A stretch of DNA of 64,000 bases from Thecamonas trahens ATCC 50062 (GCF_000142905.1 NW_013657667.1:6801-70800), one strand, 5' to 3'; shown: positions 5,326-12,504, counted from the stretch's first letter. The notes: a model not told the origin generated them from the letters alone. Program-made: numbers and translations.

Positions 5326-7768
5326 ATGTCCGCAGAGACGCTCGAGTCTGTGCAGGAGCTGCTCAACCTTGAGATTGCCAAGGTCAAGGCACTCAAGGCA
5401 GCCAATGCATGCAAGGATGAGTACATCCCCATCATTGCCGCACTTAAGGATCTTAAGAAGCGTCGTGATGCCTTCCTCAAGAACGTCGAGGACCGTGTCA
5501 AGTTCCCCGTCAACCGTGAGGCCCTCGAGTCGGTGGCCAAGCGCCGGTTCTTCTTCATCAACGGCTTCGAGATCTACGGCGGTACGTCATGCCGCTCCAC
5601 ATTACAGCTCCCCTTCTCCAACCCCTTCCCACCCTCTTCCCACACCATGGTATAAGCCCGTGTCATGCCTTCCTTCCCTCCTCCTCCTCCTCCCCCCCCC
5701 TCTTCCTCCCTCTCCTTCCCCGCTGTGCCGCTCTTGGTCTCTGTCCATTTTTTAAGTGTGGATGGCAGCGGGCAAAGGTGCGACGCCCTCGCCCTCGCCA
5801 TCGACGCCACATCGAAGCCCCCAAGCACGTTCAATGCTCCGTCGTCACATCAAAGCCCACACCGATGAGGCGGCGGTATACATTGCACCGCAGTCGAATC
5901 GCTTGTGCTCTGCACGCCGGGCATCGGAGGTGTTGTCGCTTGATTCGATGATGGGCATGGGCAGAGCCTCACTCACCCCGCGGGTACGCTTGGTTGTGAC
6001 CTTAGGTGTTGCCGGCCTGTTTGATCTCGGCCCGCCGGGCTGCGCGCTCAAGAACAACATCGTGGACACGTGGCGGTCGCACTTTGTTCATCGCGAGTCG
6101 ATGCTCGAGCTCGAGTGCTCGATCCTCACGCCGTACGACGTGCTCAAGACGTCTGGCCACGTCGACCGGTTTGTCGACTACATGGTGACGGATGTGGAGA
6201 ACGGCGAGGCGTTCCGCGCGGACCACCTGCTCGAGGACTTCCTGGAGAAGAAGCTCGAGGCGACCAAGGACGCCGAGACGCGCAAGTCGCTCAAGAACGA
6301 CCTCGACAACGTCGAGTCGTTCACGCTTGCCGAGCTCGGCGAGCGGCTGGCTTTCTACGACGTCAAGTCGCCCGAGACCGGCAACGCGCTCACCGAGCCT
6401 GTGCCGTTCAACCTCATGTTTGCGACGTCGATTGGCCCGTCGGGCAACACGCCGGGCTTCCTCCGGCCGGAGACTGCGCAGGGCATCTTTGTCAACTTTA
6501 CGCGCCTTCTCGACTACAACGCATCGCGGATGCCGTTTGCGGCGGCGCAGATCGGCTACTCGTACCGTAACGAAATTGCGCCGCGCAATGCGCTCCTCCG
6601 CGTCCGCGAGTTCCAGCAGGCCGAGATTGAGCACTTTGTTCACCCCAAGCGCAAGGACCACCCGCGGTTTGCCGAGGTCGCCGACCTCGAGGTCGACCTC
6701 TTCCCGTGGGAGAACCAGCTGGGCTCGCGCGAGATTGTGCGGACCACCTTTGGCGCCGCTGTTGCCGAGGGCGTCATCGACAACCAGACGCTGGCGTACT
6801 ACCTCGCGCGCACCATGCTCTTCATGCACTCGATCGGCATTGTGCCCGAGCACCTCCGCTTCCGGCAGCACATGCCGACCGAGATGGCGCACTACGCCTC
6901 GGACTGCTGGGACGCCGAGATCAACACCTCGTACGGCTGGGTCGAGGTTGCCGGCCACGCCGACCGCTCGTGCCACGACCTGACCGAGCACGCCAAGGCC
7001 ACCAACTCGAAGCTGGTCGCCTACGAGCGCTTTGACGAGCCGCGCGACGTCGAGGTGGTCGAGATCGATCTCAACAAGAAGCTCATCGGCAAGACCCACC
7101 GCGGCAACGCCAAGCACATCTTTGCCCACCTCGCCGGCCTCGACGACGATGCCAAGCTTGCGCTCGCCAACGAGCTCACGGCCGCCGGCGCCGTCACCAT
7201 CGCCTCGCCTGTCGGCGACCTCGAGCTCACCGCCGACATGGCCACCATCGCCACCGTCACCAAGCGCGTCTCGGGCGAGTCTTACACCCCGGCGGTCATT
7301 GAGCCCTCGTTCGGCATCGGCCGCATCCTCTACTCGGTCCTCGAGCATACCTTCTACACCCGCCCCGACGACGAGGCCCGCGCCGTCCTCGGCTTCCCCA
7401 TCGGCATCGCACCTATCAAGGTCGCCCTCCTCCCGCTCTCGGCCAACGCCGCCTTTGACCCGGCTCTCGCTGACATCCGCGTCCTCCTCGAGAAGGCCCG
7501 CATTACCTTCAAGGTCGACGCCTCGGGTGCCCAGATCGGCCGCCGCTACGCCCGCTCTGACGAGGTCGGCATTCCGCTCGCCATCACCGTCGACTTCCAG
7601 ACCGTCGACGACAACACCGTCACCCTCCGCGAGCGCGACTCGATGACTCAGGTCCGCGCCTCGGTTGCCGACGTCGTCGCCGCCGTCGGCTCGCTCGTCA
7701 TGGGCCTCAAGTCGTGGGAGACCATTCGCTCCGAGCTCCCGCACTTTTCCACCGCCACCGAGGAGTAG
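5326..7768 (+). CDS. GARS: Glycyl-tRNA synthetase (eukaryotic alpha2 type) with N-terminal WHEP-like helix pair. Exon1 5326-5581, intron 5582-6005
   Basis: RRFFFINGFEIYGG|VAGLFDLGPPG across a GTACGT..TAG intron. Motifs LRPETAQGIF, RNEIAPRNALLRVREF, EMAHYASDCWD, VIEPSFGIGRI, IGRRYARSDE. Confidence 0.96.
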
Positions 7769-8829: not shown

Positions 8830-9071
8830 CCACCAGCGTGTTGATGGCTCTTAGCAACCATGGTCTCCCCACATGGCCCCAGCTGCCACTCGCAACCACA
8901 GGCAACCACGCCCCGCCGATCGGTGTCTCTGGCCAGTTGTTGACCAACCAACCAACCGCCGGCCGACCAACGCGTCACCCCCCCCCTCCCCTCCCCCCCC
9001 CCCCCCCACCCCTCTCCCCCACCCCCATCTCCACACCTGACTCTCCCTCCTGCACGTGCATGCCCCAAGGA

Positions 9072-9787
9072 ATGCAGTTGCGTATCAATTGGTCCGAGGG
9101 CTTCTTCATTGTGGCTGTTGCGCCTGATGCCACTGTTGACGAGCTCCGTGTGGCCATTGCCTCGTCCCTCGACCGCGACCTGCCGGACACGGCCATTCTC
9201 TCTCCTCCTGGATCGGGTCCTGGCACCAACCTGCTCGGCATGGGTCCTGTGGCTCTGACTGATCTGGGTGTCACCTCGGACTCTGTCCTCAATCTGACCC
9301 TCTCCCCCCGCAGTCCTCCTCGCCTGCTCCCTCGCCGGCAGCAGAGGCCGTGGCAGCTGTCGAGGCTGCGGTCGAGGCTGCGGCAGAAGATCTGGCCACT
9401 CGCTCCTCAGCCGCGGCAGAGGCTGTGGCAGAGAAGGCCGACGAGGCCCGCAAGGCGGCTGTGGACGTTGCTGAGGATGTCATCGAGTCGGCGTCGGCCG
9501 CCGCCTCGGCTGCCAAGGAATCGGCGTCGGCCGCCGCCTCGGCTGCCAAGGAATCGGCGTCGGCCGCCGCCTCGGCTGCCAAGGAATCGGCGTCGGCCGC
9601 CGCCGCATCGGCCGCCGATGCCGCCGAGAACGCCGGCGAGGCGCTGCAAGACGCTGCCGCGTCGTCGCTGGCCACCGCATCGGACGTCGTTGCCTCGGCT
9701 GACTCGTCAACCGTGCTGTACGTGGCCGCCGGCGGTGTCGCCGTGGTGGCCATCATTGCCGGTGCGCTCCTTCTCTGGCGCCGTTAG
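9072..9787 (+). CDS. Small protein: ubiquitin-like N-terminal domain, Ala-rich repeats, C-terminal transmembrane tail anchor. Apparent frameshift at the C6 run ~9304-9309
   Basis: MQLRINWSEG..VAPDATVDELRVAI..LTDLGVTSDSVLNL has a beta-grasp pattern. The second frame ends in VLYVAAGGVAVVAIIAGALLLWRR*. Confidence 0.65.
9485..9605 (+). repeat. 33-bp coding tandem repeat (ESASAAASAAK) x~3.5
   Basis: Direct repeats of ga[ga]tcggcgtcggccgccgcctcggctgccaag. Confidence 0.9.
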
Positions 9788-9838: not shown

Positions 9839-12057
9839 TTACTTGCCCCTCGTCTTGCCCTTGCCCTTGCGAGTTGCCTGGCTTGTGGCGAGCTCGACCT
9901 CCATCCGGGTCATCTTCTCGGACAGCGCGCGCTGGACCTCACGCGACTTGGCGTACTTGCGCTCGAGGCTGCGAACATCCTTCTGGGCAGCCTCTTTTTC
10001 AAACTCGGTCTGTGCCAGCTTGAGCTTGGTAGAAACAAACTCGGTCTCGAGTAGCTCGCGCTCATGCTTGGCGAGCTCGGCGTCCGAGACGGCCAGCTCG
10101 AGCATGGTTTCGAGTGCGCGGATGCGAACGCCGTCCTCGGAGAGGCTGAGGTCATCGCACTCGGTGCCCGGCGCAACAGTCTTGGGTGCGCGGACATCGT
10201 CTGGTGCATACAGATCGACCAGCCGCTGAAGCGCGCCGACCTCGTCTGCAAGGAGCTCGTTGCGACGTTGGCTCTCGGTGAGCCTCTCGCACATCTCGTT
10301 GTAGTCGTCGGTGAGCTGGCGGAGCTCGCGGCGCTCGGCGAGAGTTCCCGGAGTCCGGAGGCTCGGCGATGGCGTTGCCGCCGCTGCTGCAGCAGCCGTC
10401 GGGAGCTCGCTGCCGTCAGTGGCCAAGATGGCGCGCCCGGACGCGGTCACCACTCGGCGGCCCTCGACGTCGAGCTTGATGACTCGCCCGTAGCCGGGCA
10501 CCTCGTCCTGCAGGCCGACCGAGAGCGTGCGCCCGCCGGGCGTCCGCAGCGTCGCTCCGTCGGGCGAGAGCGCAGCAAGGGAGTACGCAGACAGCGCGCG
10601 CTCGCGAGCCGGCGGCGGCGTGGCCGGTGCGGCGGCGGCTGTGGACGCGCGCTCGAGCGCCGCCTCGGCCGCCACTAGCCGGCTCTCCAGTGACGTGATC
10701 TCGATTTTGCGCGCCTTGTTCTTGGCCTTGAGCGCGGCGACCTTGGCGGTCGAGTCCTCCAGCAACGCGAGCAGCTCGTCGCGGGTTGCGCCGCTGCTGC
10801 TCGCTCCTGAGCCGCTTGCGGCCTCCAACGACGCGTTCAGCCGCGACTCGGCCTCGAGCTCGGCGATGCGGTCGTCGGCCTCGTCGAGCTGGCTCTTGTA
10901 TTGCAGGATGATGGTCGCCTTTTCGGCTACCTCCATTTGCAGCTCTTCGATGGTCTCCTCCTGCCGCTGCTTCTCTTTCCACGCGTCGGTCAGCTGCTGC
11001 TGCAGCATCTTCTGCAAGTAGCGAACCTCAGACGCGCCACCAGCGCCGCCCGGCACAGCGCCGGGGCCGACCGGGACCGAGACCGGTGCAGCTGTCGCCT
11101 CAGCAGGCGATGCTACCGACGCATCAGTCTGGCGCGAGCCGCGGAGCGACGGCGACCGCCGCTGCCGCGGCGGCGACGCCCGCAAACTGGTTGGGTGTGC
11201 TAGCGGCTGGCTGGTTGTGCTGGGCGGCGGCGGCGTTGCTGCTGCCGAGAACGACAGCGCAGGAGGAGGAGCGCTGTCCTCCTCGTCGTCCGATGAGCAG
11301 CCGGAAATCTCTGAGACCGCGGACATGGACATCGAGTCCGAGTCCGACTCCGAGTCGGATCCTGCTCCATGAGCAGCCGGCCCGCTTCCAGCGTCGTCGA
11401 GGCAGACCGAGGTGATAGTGACGGTGAGCGAAGCCGACGCCAGCTTCTTGGACTTGATCTTGAGCGCAAGCGTCTTGGTCACCGGCTTGGCGGTCACAGT
11501 GGCGTACTCGCCAAAGTCGACGCTTGTGGTGGCCAACGTCTTCGTCCGCGGCTTCTTCCCCGCGCCAGCCGAGGCATCGACGGCGAGCAGACTGAGGCGG
11601 TAGAGCTTGGCGTCCGCGACCGGCGCCTCGGGCGACTTGTACAGCGTGGCCAGCATGCACAGCGAGGTCTGCCACTCGACAATGCCCGAGTTTGCCACAA
11701 ACGGCGCAGCAGGCGTCGATGCCGTCCGCGGTCCGCGGCGCCATGTCACAGCCAGTGGCACTGGGCGCCTGTGTGGCAAGGCGAAGCCAGACCAGCCGTT
11801 CATGCCCCCGCCATACACACACAACACACGTAGCCGCACAACCACCAGGTACAGACAGGCCAGGCCATACATACACAGACGCAATCACCCAAAGTAGTGT
11901 ATAAGTACCTTCCATCCCCCCCTCTTCCGCTCACAACCCCACCTCACCACCCATGGCCATACCACTTGGTCTTCGGCACCAGACTGGCCGAGTGGACGAC
12001 GACGTCAAAGCGGAACCTCAGCTTGGCCTTGCCTATCCTCTTGATGCTCTTAATCAT
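9839..12057 (-). CDS. NT-C2 (EEIG1/EHBP1 N-terminal C2) domain plus long coiled-coil protein with an embedded DotF/IcmG-like domain. Exon1 12057-11963, intron 11962-11769
   Basis: Exon1 MIKSIKRIGKAKLRFRFDVVVHSA splices (GTATGG..CAG) to W-RPVPLAVTWRRGPR..VEWQTSLCMLATLYK..SVDFGEYA, a typical NT-C2 pattern. Heptad-rich C-terminal half. Confidence 0.82.
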
Positions 12058-12504
12058 GACAGAGTACACCACGGACGAGCTAGTACCAGTACCGCTACTA
12101 CTATCACCAAGCACACTCTGTTGCTATCTCCTCCCCAGAACCTGTCTCTGATCCCGCGTTGAGTGTGCCCTCACCCACCTCCGAACACTGACCATTGTTC
12201 GCTACGGAGCCATGTCGCACTGTTCCTGGCCACCACCACCACCACCACCACCGCCACCACCGCCACCGCCCCCATCATACCCACCACCATTGCCACCACC
12301 ATCATCATCATTGCCACTCACCATCCCCACTGCCCCTCTGCCCACACCTTGGCCGCGGTGCAGGTGACGACGCTGTGCTGCTGAGTCCGTACCCACATCC
12401 GCGCACAGGTGCGAGCTGCGTGCTCAGTCTGCCCCTCTGTCGTCTTCAGCCTGCACCACTACCAGCAAGAAGCTTACAGCTGCGGTCGCAAGGGAACAGC
12501 TTTA

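Follow-up and report, generated by a model that had tools for sequence, protein, structure and literature searches.

A DotF/IcmG-type C-terminal domain inside an NT-C2 coiled-coil protein of Thecamonas trahens

Main

In type II secretion systems and type IV pili, the GspC-HR and PilP domains serve as docking modules for the N0 domains of secretins. In Legionella, the C-terminal domain of the type IVB secretion protein DotF/IcmG (residues 207-269) forms two three-stranded sheets and is present in 31 copies per Dot/Icm machine; it is periplasmic, one of its faces binds Dis3 of the outer-membrane cap and DotH of the periplasmic ring, and it was compared to GspC and PilP by the authors who described it (PMC8486379). 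Here we report a member of the same domain family in a eukaryote. It lies in AMSG_03425 of Thecamonas trahens ATCC 50062, an uncharacterised protein of 674 amino acids (aa; database id P0001). The gene is on the minus strand of a 64,000-nucleotide stretch of genomic DNA (NW_013657667.1:6801-70800), referred to below as the window.

The AMSG_03425 segment and the C-terminal domain of DotF (7MUC residues 207-269; NCBIfam model NF038218) correspond without gaps to the same two-sheet domain of about 57 residues. The segment is 34-36% identical to Legionella pneumophila DotF (7MUC), and the closest family member reaches 46%; the motifs Y..A..P, G.T..V, PGYG.V..(I/L)D and T.SG occur both in the segment and in DotF. 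Unlike in DotF, the domain has an internal, probably cytosolic position in a eukaryotic setting rather than a C-terminal, periplasmic one; the protein has an NT-C2 domain in place of the N-terminal cytoplasmic region and transmembrane helix, and no dotG or dotH lies beside its gene. AMSG_03425 is not a DotF ortholog, because it scores below the curated cut-off, lacks a transmembrane helix, does not end with the domain and sits outside any such gene cluster. The segment itself does belong to the DotF C-terminal family, at the level of the domain only.

Other described proteins are more distant or resemble different parts of AMSG_03425. The HR domains of GspC, PulC and LspC, and PilP, have the same fold as that predicted here, but GspC-HR and PilP show no significant sequence similarity to the segment (GspC, expectation value (E) 0.41; 10-22% identity), and the segment is clearly nearer to DotF. 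The TraP protein of IncI1 conjugative plasmids (NF033885) is weakly matched by bacterial DotF relatives, which places it in the same wider family; the TraP model did not match the eukaryotic segment. NT-C2 proteins of the EHBP1, EEIG1 and plant PMI1 type (PF10358) resemble AMSG_03425: in both, a membrane-binding domain of C2 type occupies the N terminus and long helical regions come after it. We know of no described NT-C2 protein with a secretion-system domain, and a full-text literature search found no paper that names AMSG_03425 and none that pairs IcmG with NT-C2.

Sequence similarity to DotF

NF038218 (IcmG_DotF_IVB) matched an 83-aa piece around the segment with an E value of 9.5e-7 (28.7 bits, profile positions 203-259 of 266). 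Against the whole of AMSG_03425 it reached 31.2 bits, below its curated cut-off of 200 bits. A single-sequence phmmer search of all PDB sequences returned Legionella DotF (7MUC residues 207-263) as its top match, without gaps (E 0.0025). With a profile built from just the two eukaryotic copies, those of AMSG_03425 and of the marine ortholog P0002 described below, the same protein was found at 2.8e-6; the next match was GspC, at 0.41. Among 1.84 billion representative proteins, phmmer gave 15 matches at E values up to 1e-3. Eight were proteins of 79-334 aa that NCBIfam assigns to IcmG/DotF, aligned at their C-terminal ends with 38-46% identity. Six others (P0003, P0004, P0005, P0008, P0011 and P0015) were multi-stretch repeat proteins (WD40, SpaA-type or other) that carried no DotF signal, and we discarded them as spurious.

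As a control for selection bias, we built a hidden Markov model (HMM) from 30 DotF domains chosen through NF038218 in 301 bacterial genomes, independently of the query. This model matched P0002 with 33.2 bits and P0001 with 30.4 bits, gapless over positions 2-55 of 57 (E 0.0035 and 0.026, respectively, at Z = 1.84e9). In gamma-type DotF, 27 columns reach a conservation of 60% or more, and P0001 has the same residue in 19 of these. The gamma-type domains compared have an RAW motif whose R and W are invariant and a GD motif with an invariant G; these residues are replaced in the eukaryotic copies, and an RTPGGRT loop is invariant between those two copies. Collectively, these sequence comparisons identify residues 427-479 as a true homolog of the DotF/IcmG C-terminal domain.

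Similarity outside the segment does not extend this relationship. The coiled-coil part of NF038218 also matches 12 other loci of the genome and 9 of 14 control genomes, and carrying the match on to residues 311-426 adds only about 2.5 bits. This part of the model is unspecific, and we do not take its match as a sign of a DotF origin for the coiled coil as well.

An earlier note on this DNA, made from the sequence alone, had put forward the DotF/IcmG homology, which is now backed by NF038218, by profiles run in both directions and by predicted structure. The 53 residues that it quoted are the exact minus-strand translation of 10427-10585, and the DotF sequence that it gave is indeed that of 7MUC residues 207-263, with the gapless alignment it described. 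The plus-strand reading of the same positions yields an unrelated peptide and was set aside; the feature belongs to the minus strand.

The domain in bacteria

We recovered bacterial relatives by scanning a genome collection with a four-sequence alignment. In every one, the domain is at the extreme C terminus of a protein of 184-592 aa that stops 3-18 residues past it; in AMSG_03425, 195 residues follow. The bacterial DotF proteins have a maximum 19-residue Kyte-Doolittle hydropathy of 2.25-2.53 near residue 51. All five bacterial genomes tested contain dotH (PF12293); in the four cases in which it was located, it and the DotF-like gene are 1-3 kb apart.

The gammaproteobacterial relatives match NF038218. 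Three of them, from metagenome-assembled genomes (MAGs) of uncultured Gammaproteobacteria (L012, L013 and L016), are long-form DotF proteins, again with the domain at the C terminus; counted from the first ATG they have 518-582 aa, roughly double the length of Legionella DotF. Five further relatives (L017-L021), from MAGs of Acetobacteraceae and unclassified Proteobacteria, carry the same C-terminal domain and escape that model. These are proteins of 420-520 aa with a PGLAML...PGYG.V motif; the three scanned (L017-L019) had no NCBIfam match, and the two located (L017 and L018) lie 1-3 kb from dotH. They appear to be DotF equivalents that lack annotation, from alphaproteobacterial type IVB or I-type conjugation systems. 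One of the genomes (G005) has at least four full dotH copies.

Predicted structure

All structures of the eukaryotic domain considered here are predictions. An AlphaFold2 model made with DotF sequences in the alignment has six strands and a core predicted local distance difference test (pLDDT) score of about 88. In Foldseek its best matches were the 7MUC DotF chains, with a template modelling (TM) score of 0.84-0.87 and a root-mean-square deviation of 1.1-1.3 Å, followed by PulC, GspC-HR, PilP and LspC. Because an alignment containing DotF could bias the model, we refolded the domain from the two eukaryotic sequences alone and obtained the same six strands, with a core pLDDT of about 85.

In an exhaustive VIA-align search with this eukaryote-only model, DotF ranked first (Z 10.0, 63 of 63 residues, 32% identity). 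Ranks 2-10 (Z 8.3 to 4.4) were all type II secretion or type IV pilus proteins, among them GspC-HR (3OSS, 8.3), chains of PilP (7.7 to 5.5), LspC (5.7) and PulC (5.3), and unrelated folds began at about Z 4. A single-sequence model of residues 420-485 in the ESM Atlas matched IcmG(DotF) clusters at a TM score of 0.84. The predicted domain is thus made of two three-stranded sheets and superposes on 7MUC DotF. The AlphaFold and Foldseek comparison suggested in the earlier note returned DotF as the best match.

The host gene and its expression

AMSG_03425 has two exons. A minus-strand open reading frame (ORF) of 681 codons (9839-11884) houses the domain segment; upstream of it, a short first exon with its start ATG at 12057 supplies the first 32 residues. 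In a scripted comparison, the translation of the joined exons was identical to P0001. The features of the gene are as follows.

9839..12057, minus: whole gene AMSG_03425; exon 1 at 12057-11962, exon 2 at 11767-9839, stop codon included
11768..11961, minus: spliceosomal intron of 194 nucleotides (nt); the canonical GT..AG reading is 11769-11962, with the mRNA unchanged
11390..12057, minus: NT-C2 membrane-binding domain (Pfam PF10358), residues 1-158, interrupted by the intron
11012..11389, minus: acidic linker rich in Ser and Pro, residues 159-284, by composition
10616..11011, minus: heptad-like helical stretches before the domain, residues 285-346 and 368-416, from a crude heptad scan
10586..10615, minus: Ala/Pro linker before the domain, residues 417-426, by sequence
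10427..10585, minus: beta domain of DotF/IcmG C-terminal type (HR/PilP fold), residues 427-479, with six predicted strands, by sequence and predicted structure
10346..10426, minus: Ala/Pro linker after the domain, residues 480-506, by sequence
9884..10345, minus: C-terminal heptad-like region, residues 507-660, from the heptad scan and motifs common to the domain-less paralog L052

PF10358 matched with an E value of 4.3e-12 and 46.3 bits, against a gathering cut-off of 25.2, with profile positions 24-135 in exon 2. Residues 159-284 are probably disordered, as judged by their composition. The heptad scan found stretches poor in Pro and Gly at residues 285-346, 368-416, 507-550 and 573-660, and there were weak matches to coiled-coil families (SMC_prok_B over residues 290-418, E 7e-5; also DUF4407 and Spc29). 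The segment thus lies between the heptad-like stretches 368-416 and 507-550, in the setting between coiled coils and Ala/Pro linkers that had been described for it. No segment resembling a transmembrane helix was found in either eukaryotic protein (maximum 19-residue Kyte-Doolittle value 1.07 in P0001 and 1.22 in P0002).

The gene is spliced and has the character of its host. In a metatranscriptome contig (X2 record 18), positions 11767 and 11962 are joined and 194 nt are absent, whose ends read GT..AG on the minus strand and CT..AC on the plus. The intron is therefore real and removed in RNA, as had been proposed. Seawater metatranscriptome contigs (X1, at least 99% identical) span most of AMSG_03425. 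For the junctions between domain and coiled coil, where RNA evidence had been called for, the downstream one is spanned by X1 record 3 (10254-10462), and among the contigs listed none covers 10463-10578, the middle of the domain. G+C content at third codon positions (GC3) is 0.91 in the domain and 0.80 in the remainder of the gene; we take 0.91 as a fully host-like composition and, therefore, the event as an old one. The neighbouring genes in the window are eukaryotic. In the 28.7-Mb T. trahens assembly we found no second copy of the domain and neither DotH nor another type IVB gene.

Ortholog and paralog

One ortholog, P0002, was found, present in a Tara Oceans assembly and in a second, independent marine metagenome assembly. 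It is intronless, has 688 aa and three near-identical variants, and is 51% identical to P0001 by BLASTP (57% in a pairwise alignment). Its architecture is that of AMSG_03425, with the domain retained. A search for further copies, proposed in the earlier note, gave this one marine ortholog with the domain and no second copy in T. trahens itself. Within the domain, LRTPGGRTLSVG and EVPGYGRV are invariant between the two proteins. The linkers are less constrained, with conservation of 33% over residues 406-426 and 46% over 480-505; the NT-C2 domain is 58% identical, residues 159-277 are 39% conserved and the upstream heptad stretches 67-79%.

The loci of the two orthologs are syntenic, as a convergent gene for a ubiquitin-like, tail-anchored protein at the 3' end of AMSG_03425 (window 9039-9787, plus) is kept at L009:8236-9300 (minus), where 90 residues are 54% identical. 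Upstream, the gene next to the marine ortholog encodes an FG-GAP repeat protein of about 1,915 aa (L009:1-5670 and L010:76-5823, both minus); within the window, no FG-GAP gene is present on that side of AMSG_03425 in T. trahens.

Word searches of 5.8e9 proteins with the whole protein, the domain region and the NT-C2 region found only P0001 and P0002; the NT-C2 region is divergent and gave one ortholog only. The domain-region search returned P0001 together with WD40 noise and missed P0002 despite exact shared words of 12 and 8 residues, so a blank result in it does not mean absence.

T. trahens also has a paralog on contig C37 (G000:C37:207073-209136; L052:1573-3636, minus, with the aligned locus at L052:1576-3432). 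It is 31% identical to AMSG_03425 and collinear with it through the NT-C2 domain, the acidic linker, the coiled coils and the C-terminal motifs, with a gap at the position of the DotF-type domain. This paralog is useful as a natural 'minus-domain' control.

Probable transfer and insertion

Most likely, the domain was acquired horizontally, its source being a bacterium or conjugative element that had a type IVB system. This transfer would have preceded the split between T. trahens and its uncultured marine relative, and would have placed the domain in the linker between the coiled-coil segments of a pre-existing NT-C2 scaffold. The direction of transfer is suggested by the distribution of the domain. 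The collinear paralog without it makes the domain look like an insertion into a host scaffold and so supports the integration proposed in the earlier note. From the same distribution, entry after the gene duplication is a simpler reading than loss from the paralog.

A tree of the domain (57 columns, 49 domains, 42 of them from gamma-type DotFs) unites the eukaryotic pair with 98/85 support on a long branch between the alphaproteobacterial-type (Acetobacteraceae MAG) group and the gamma-type group. By tree path the nearest sequences are the long-form DotFs of uncultured Gammaproteobacteria, a placement without support. The Legionellales-like donor favoured in the earlier note is thus not shown, since the pair branches between the gamma and alphaproteobacterial groups. 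Searches for relatives in other sources found none in 72,556 plasmids (tblastn), none in the viral contigs of IMG/VR and, with gene-wide motifs, none in JGI metagenomes. One JGI match to a domain motif (L053) was a false positive, an unrelated GC-rich ORF sharing only LRTPGGRTL.

Proposed function and alternative explanations

We propose that the NT-C2 end of AMSG_03425 binds membrane, that the helical regions form an extended, probably dimeric coiled-coil stalk, and that the beta domain, on its flexible Ala/Pro linkers, works as a small protein-docking surface. It would do so in the cytosol, as the protein has no membrane-spanning segment. Such a role would parallel that in bacteria, where DotF uses one face to contact DotH or Dis3, and secretin N0 domains are bound by the related HR/PilP domains. 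The change of residues that are invariant in bacteria suggests that the domain binds a new partner.

Taken together, we think it probable that the domain is a DotF homolog that was transferred horizontally, inserted into an NT-C2 scaffold and put to use in docking. Several points weigh against this combined reading. Only two eukaryotic lineages with the domain are known, and paralog loss and insertion are therefore indistinguishable; the tree nests the eukaryotic pair in no sampled bacterial clade, so that its topology gives neither donor nor direction. The single-sequence E values are modest because the domain has only about 55 residues, and the domain's middle falls in the stretch that none of the listed RNA contigs covers. 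Docking itself is probable by analogy with the bacterial relatives.

An unrelated small beta domain that shares a PGYG-type motif with DotF, through chance or convergence, is a very improbable explanation of the similarity. The domain is short, several of the top phmmer matches are unrelated repeat proteins (WD40 and SpaA), and LRTPGGRTL alone recurs in an unrelated actinobacterial-like ORF. The alignment, however, is gapless and full-length, its signal rises from single sequences to profiles in both directions, and 19 of 27 conserved columns are retained; moreover, three independent structural comparisons, some with models made without bacterial sequences, all rank DotF first. The bacterial affinity of the domain is also the only point in favour of an assembly chimera or bacterial contamination, to which we assign a negligible chance and which is already refuted for practical purposes. 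A single ORF runs on from the NT-C2 domain and coiled coils, its intron is spliced, its GC3 in the domain is host-like, and two independent metagenome assemblies show the same architecture with synteny. An RNA contig (X1 record 3) spans the downstream junction, and the genome yielded no other type IVB gene. The earlier judgement that contamination was unlikely therefore stands, on the spliced intron, the NT-C2 domain, the eukaryotic neighbours and the host-like GC3.

As an alternative to docking, the domain might be a self-association module that clamps or registers two coiled-coil chains, or links dimers into higher-order assemblies, with no different partner; we regard this as unlikely, although it deserves attention. 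The two long heptad-like stretches on either side would hold two copies close together, and the Dot/Icm machine contains 31 copies of DotF, but the contacts described for the DotF domain are with Dis3 and DotH, on one face, and no DotF-DotF contact is described (PMC8486379). A repurposed interaction or oligomerisation module is plausible in general terms. The earlier note had also raised a host decoy or sensor for type IVB components; such a protein would bind, for example, the DotH of an invading bacterium. Phagotrophic protists encounter Legionellales-like bacteria, and the part of DotF to which the domain is homologous is the one that binds DotH. In Legionella, however, both the DotF domain and DotH are periplasmic (PMC8486379) and, we infer, not presented to the host cytosol, which makes this role unlikely; the eukaryotic copies have other residues in place of the invariant R and W (RAW) and G (GD), and the domain is present only once and has not expanded into a family. 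A decoy or sensor thus finds no support in the analysis, and we give it very little credence. As a long shot, the domain might still recognise DotH-type parts and act as a detector or trap for Legionellales-like bacteria whose envelope is breached in the phagosome or cytosol or, more modestly, might be the fossil of an old association between apusomonads and intracellular bacteria with type IVB systems.

Apusomonads, to which T. trahens belongs, are close relatives of animals and fungi. If the reading of a transferred and inserted docking domain holds, AMSG_03425 would be a rare case in which a structural piece of a secretion machine was captured and reused by a eukaryote as a single domain. 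It would also offer a dated marker, with insertion placed between a gene duplication and a later split of species, that may bear on past contact between apusomonads and type IVB bacteria, and a natural experiment in what a docking module of about 55 residues and HR/PilP fold does outside the periplasm. Its function is still inferred and no long-standing problem is settled by it; the concrete question that it raises is which partner the domain binds.

Other features of the window

Just upstream of exon 1, positions 12195-12330 form a simple repeat rich in GGT and GGC that is His/Gly-rich in some frames. Also near AMSG_03425, a long plus-strand ORF at 5756-7768 resembles a class II aminoacyl-tRNA synthetase, of glycyl type by eye, and appears to be an ordinary eukaryotic gene.

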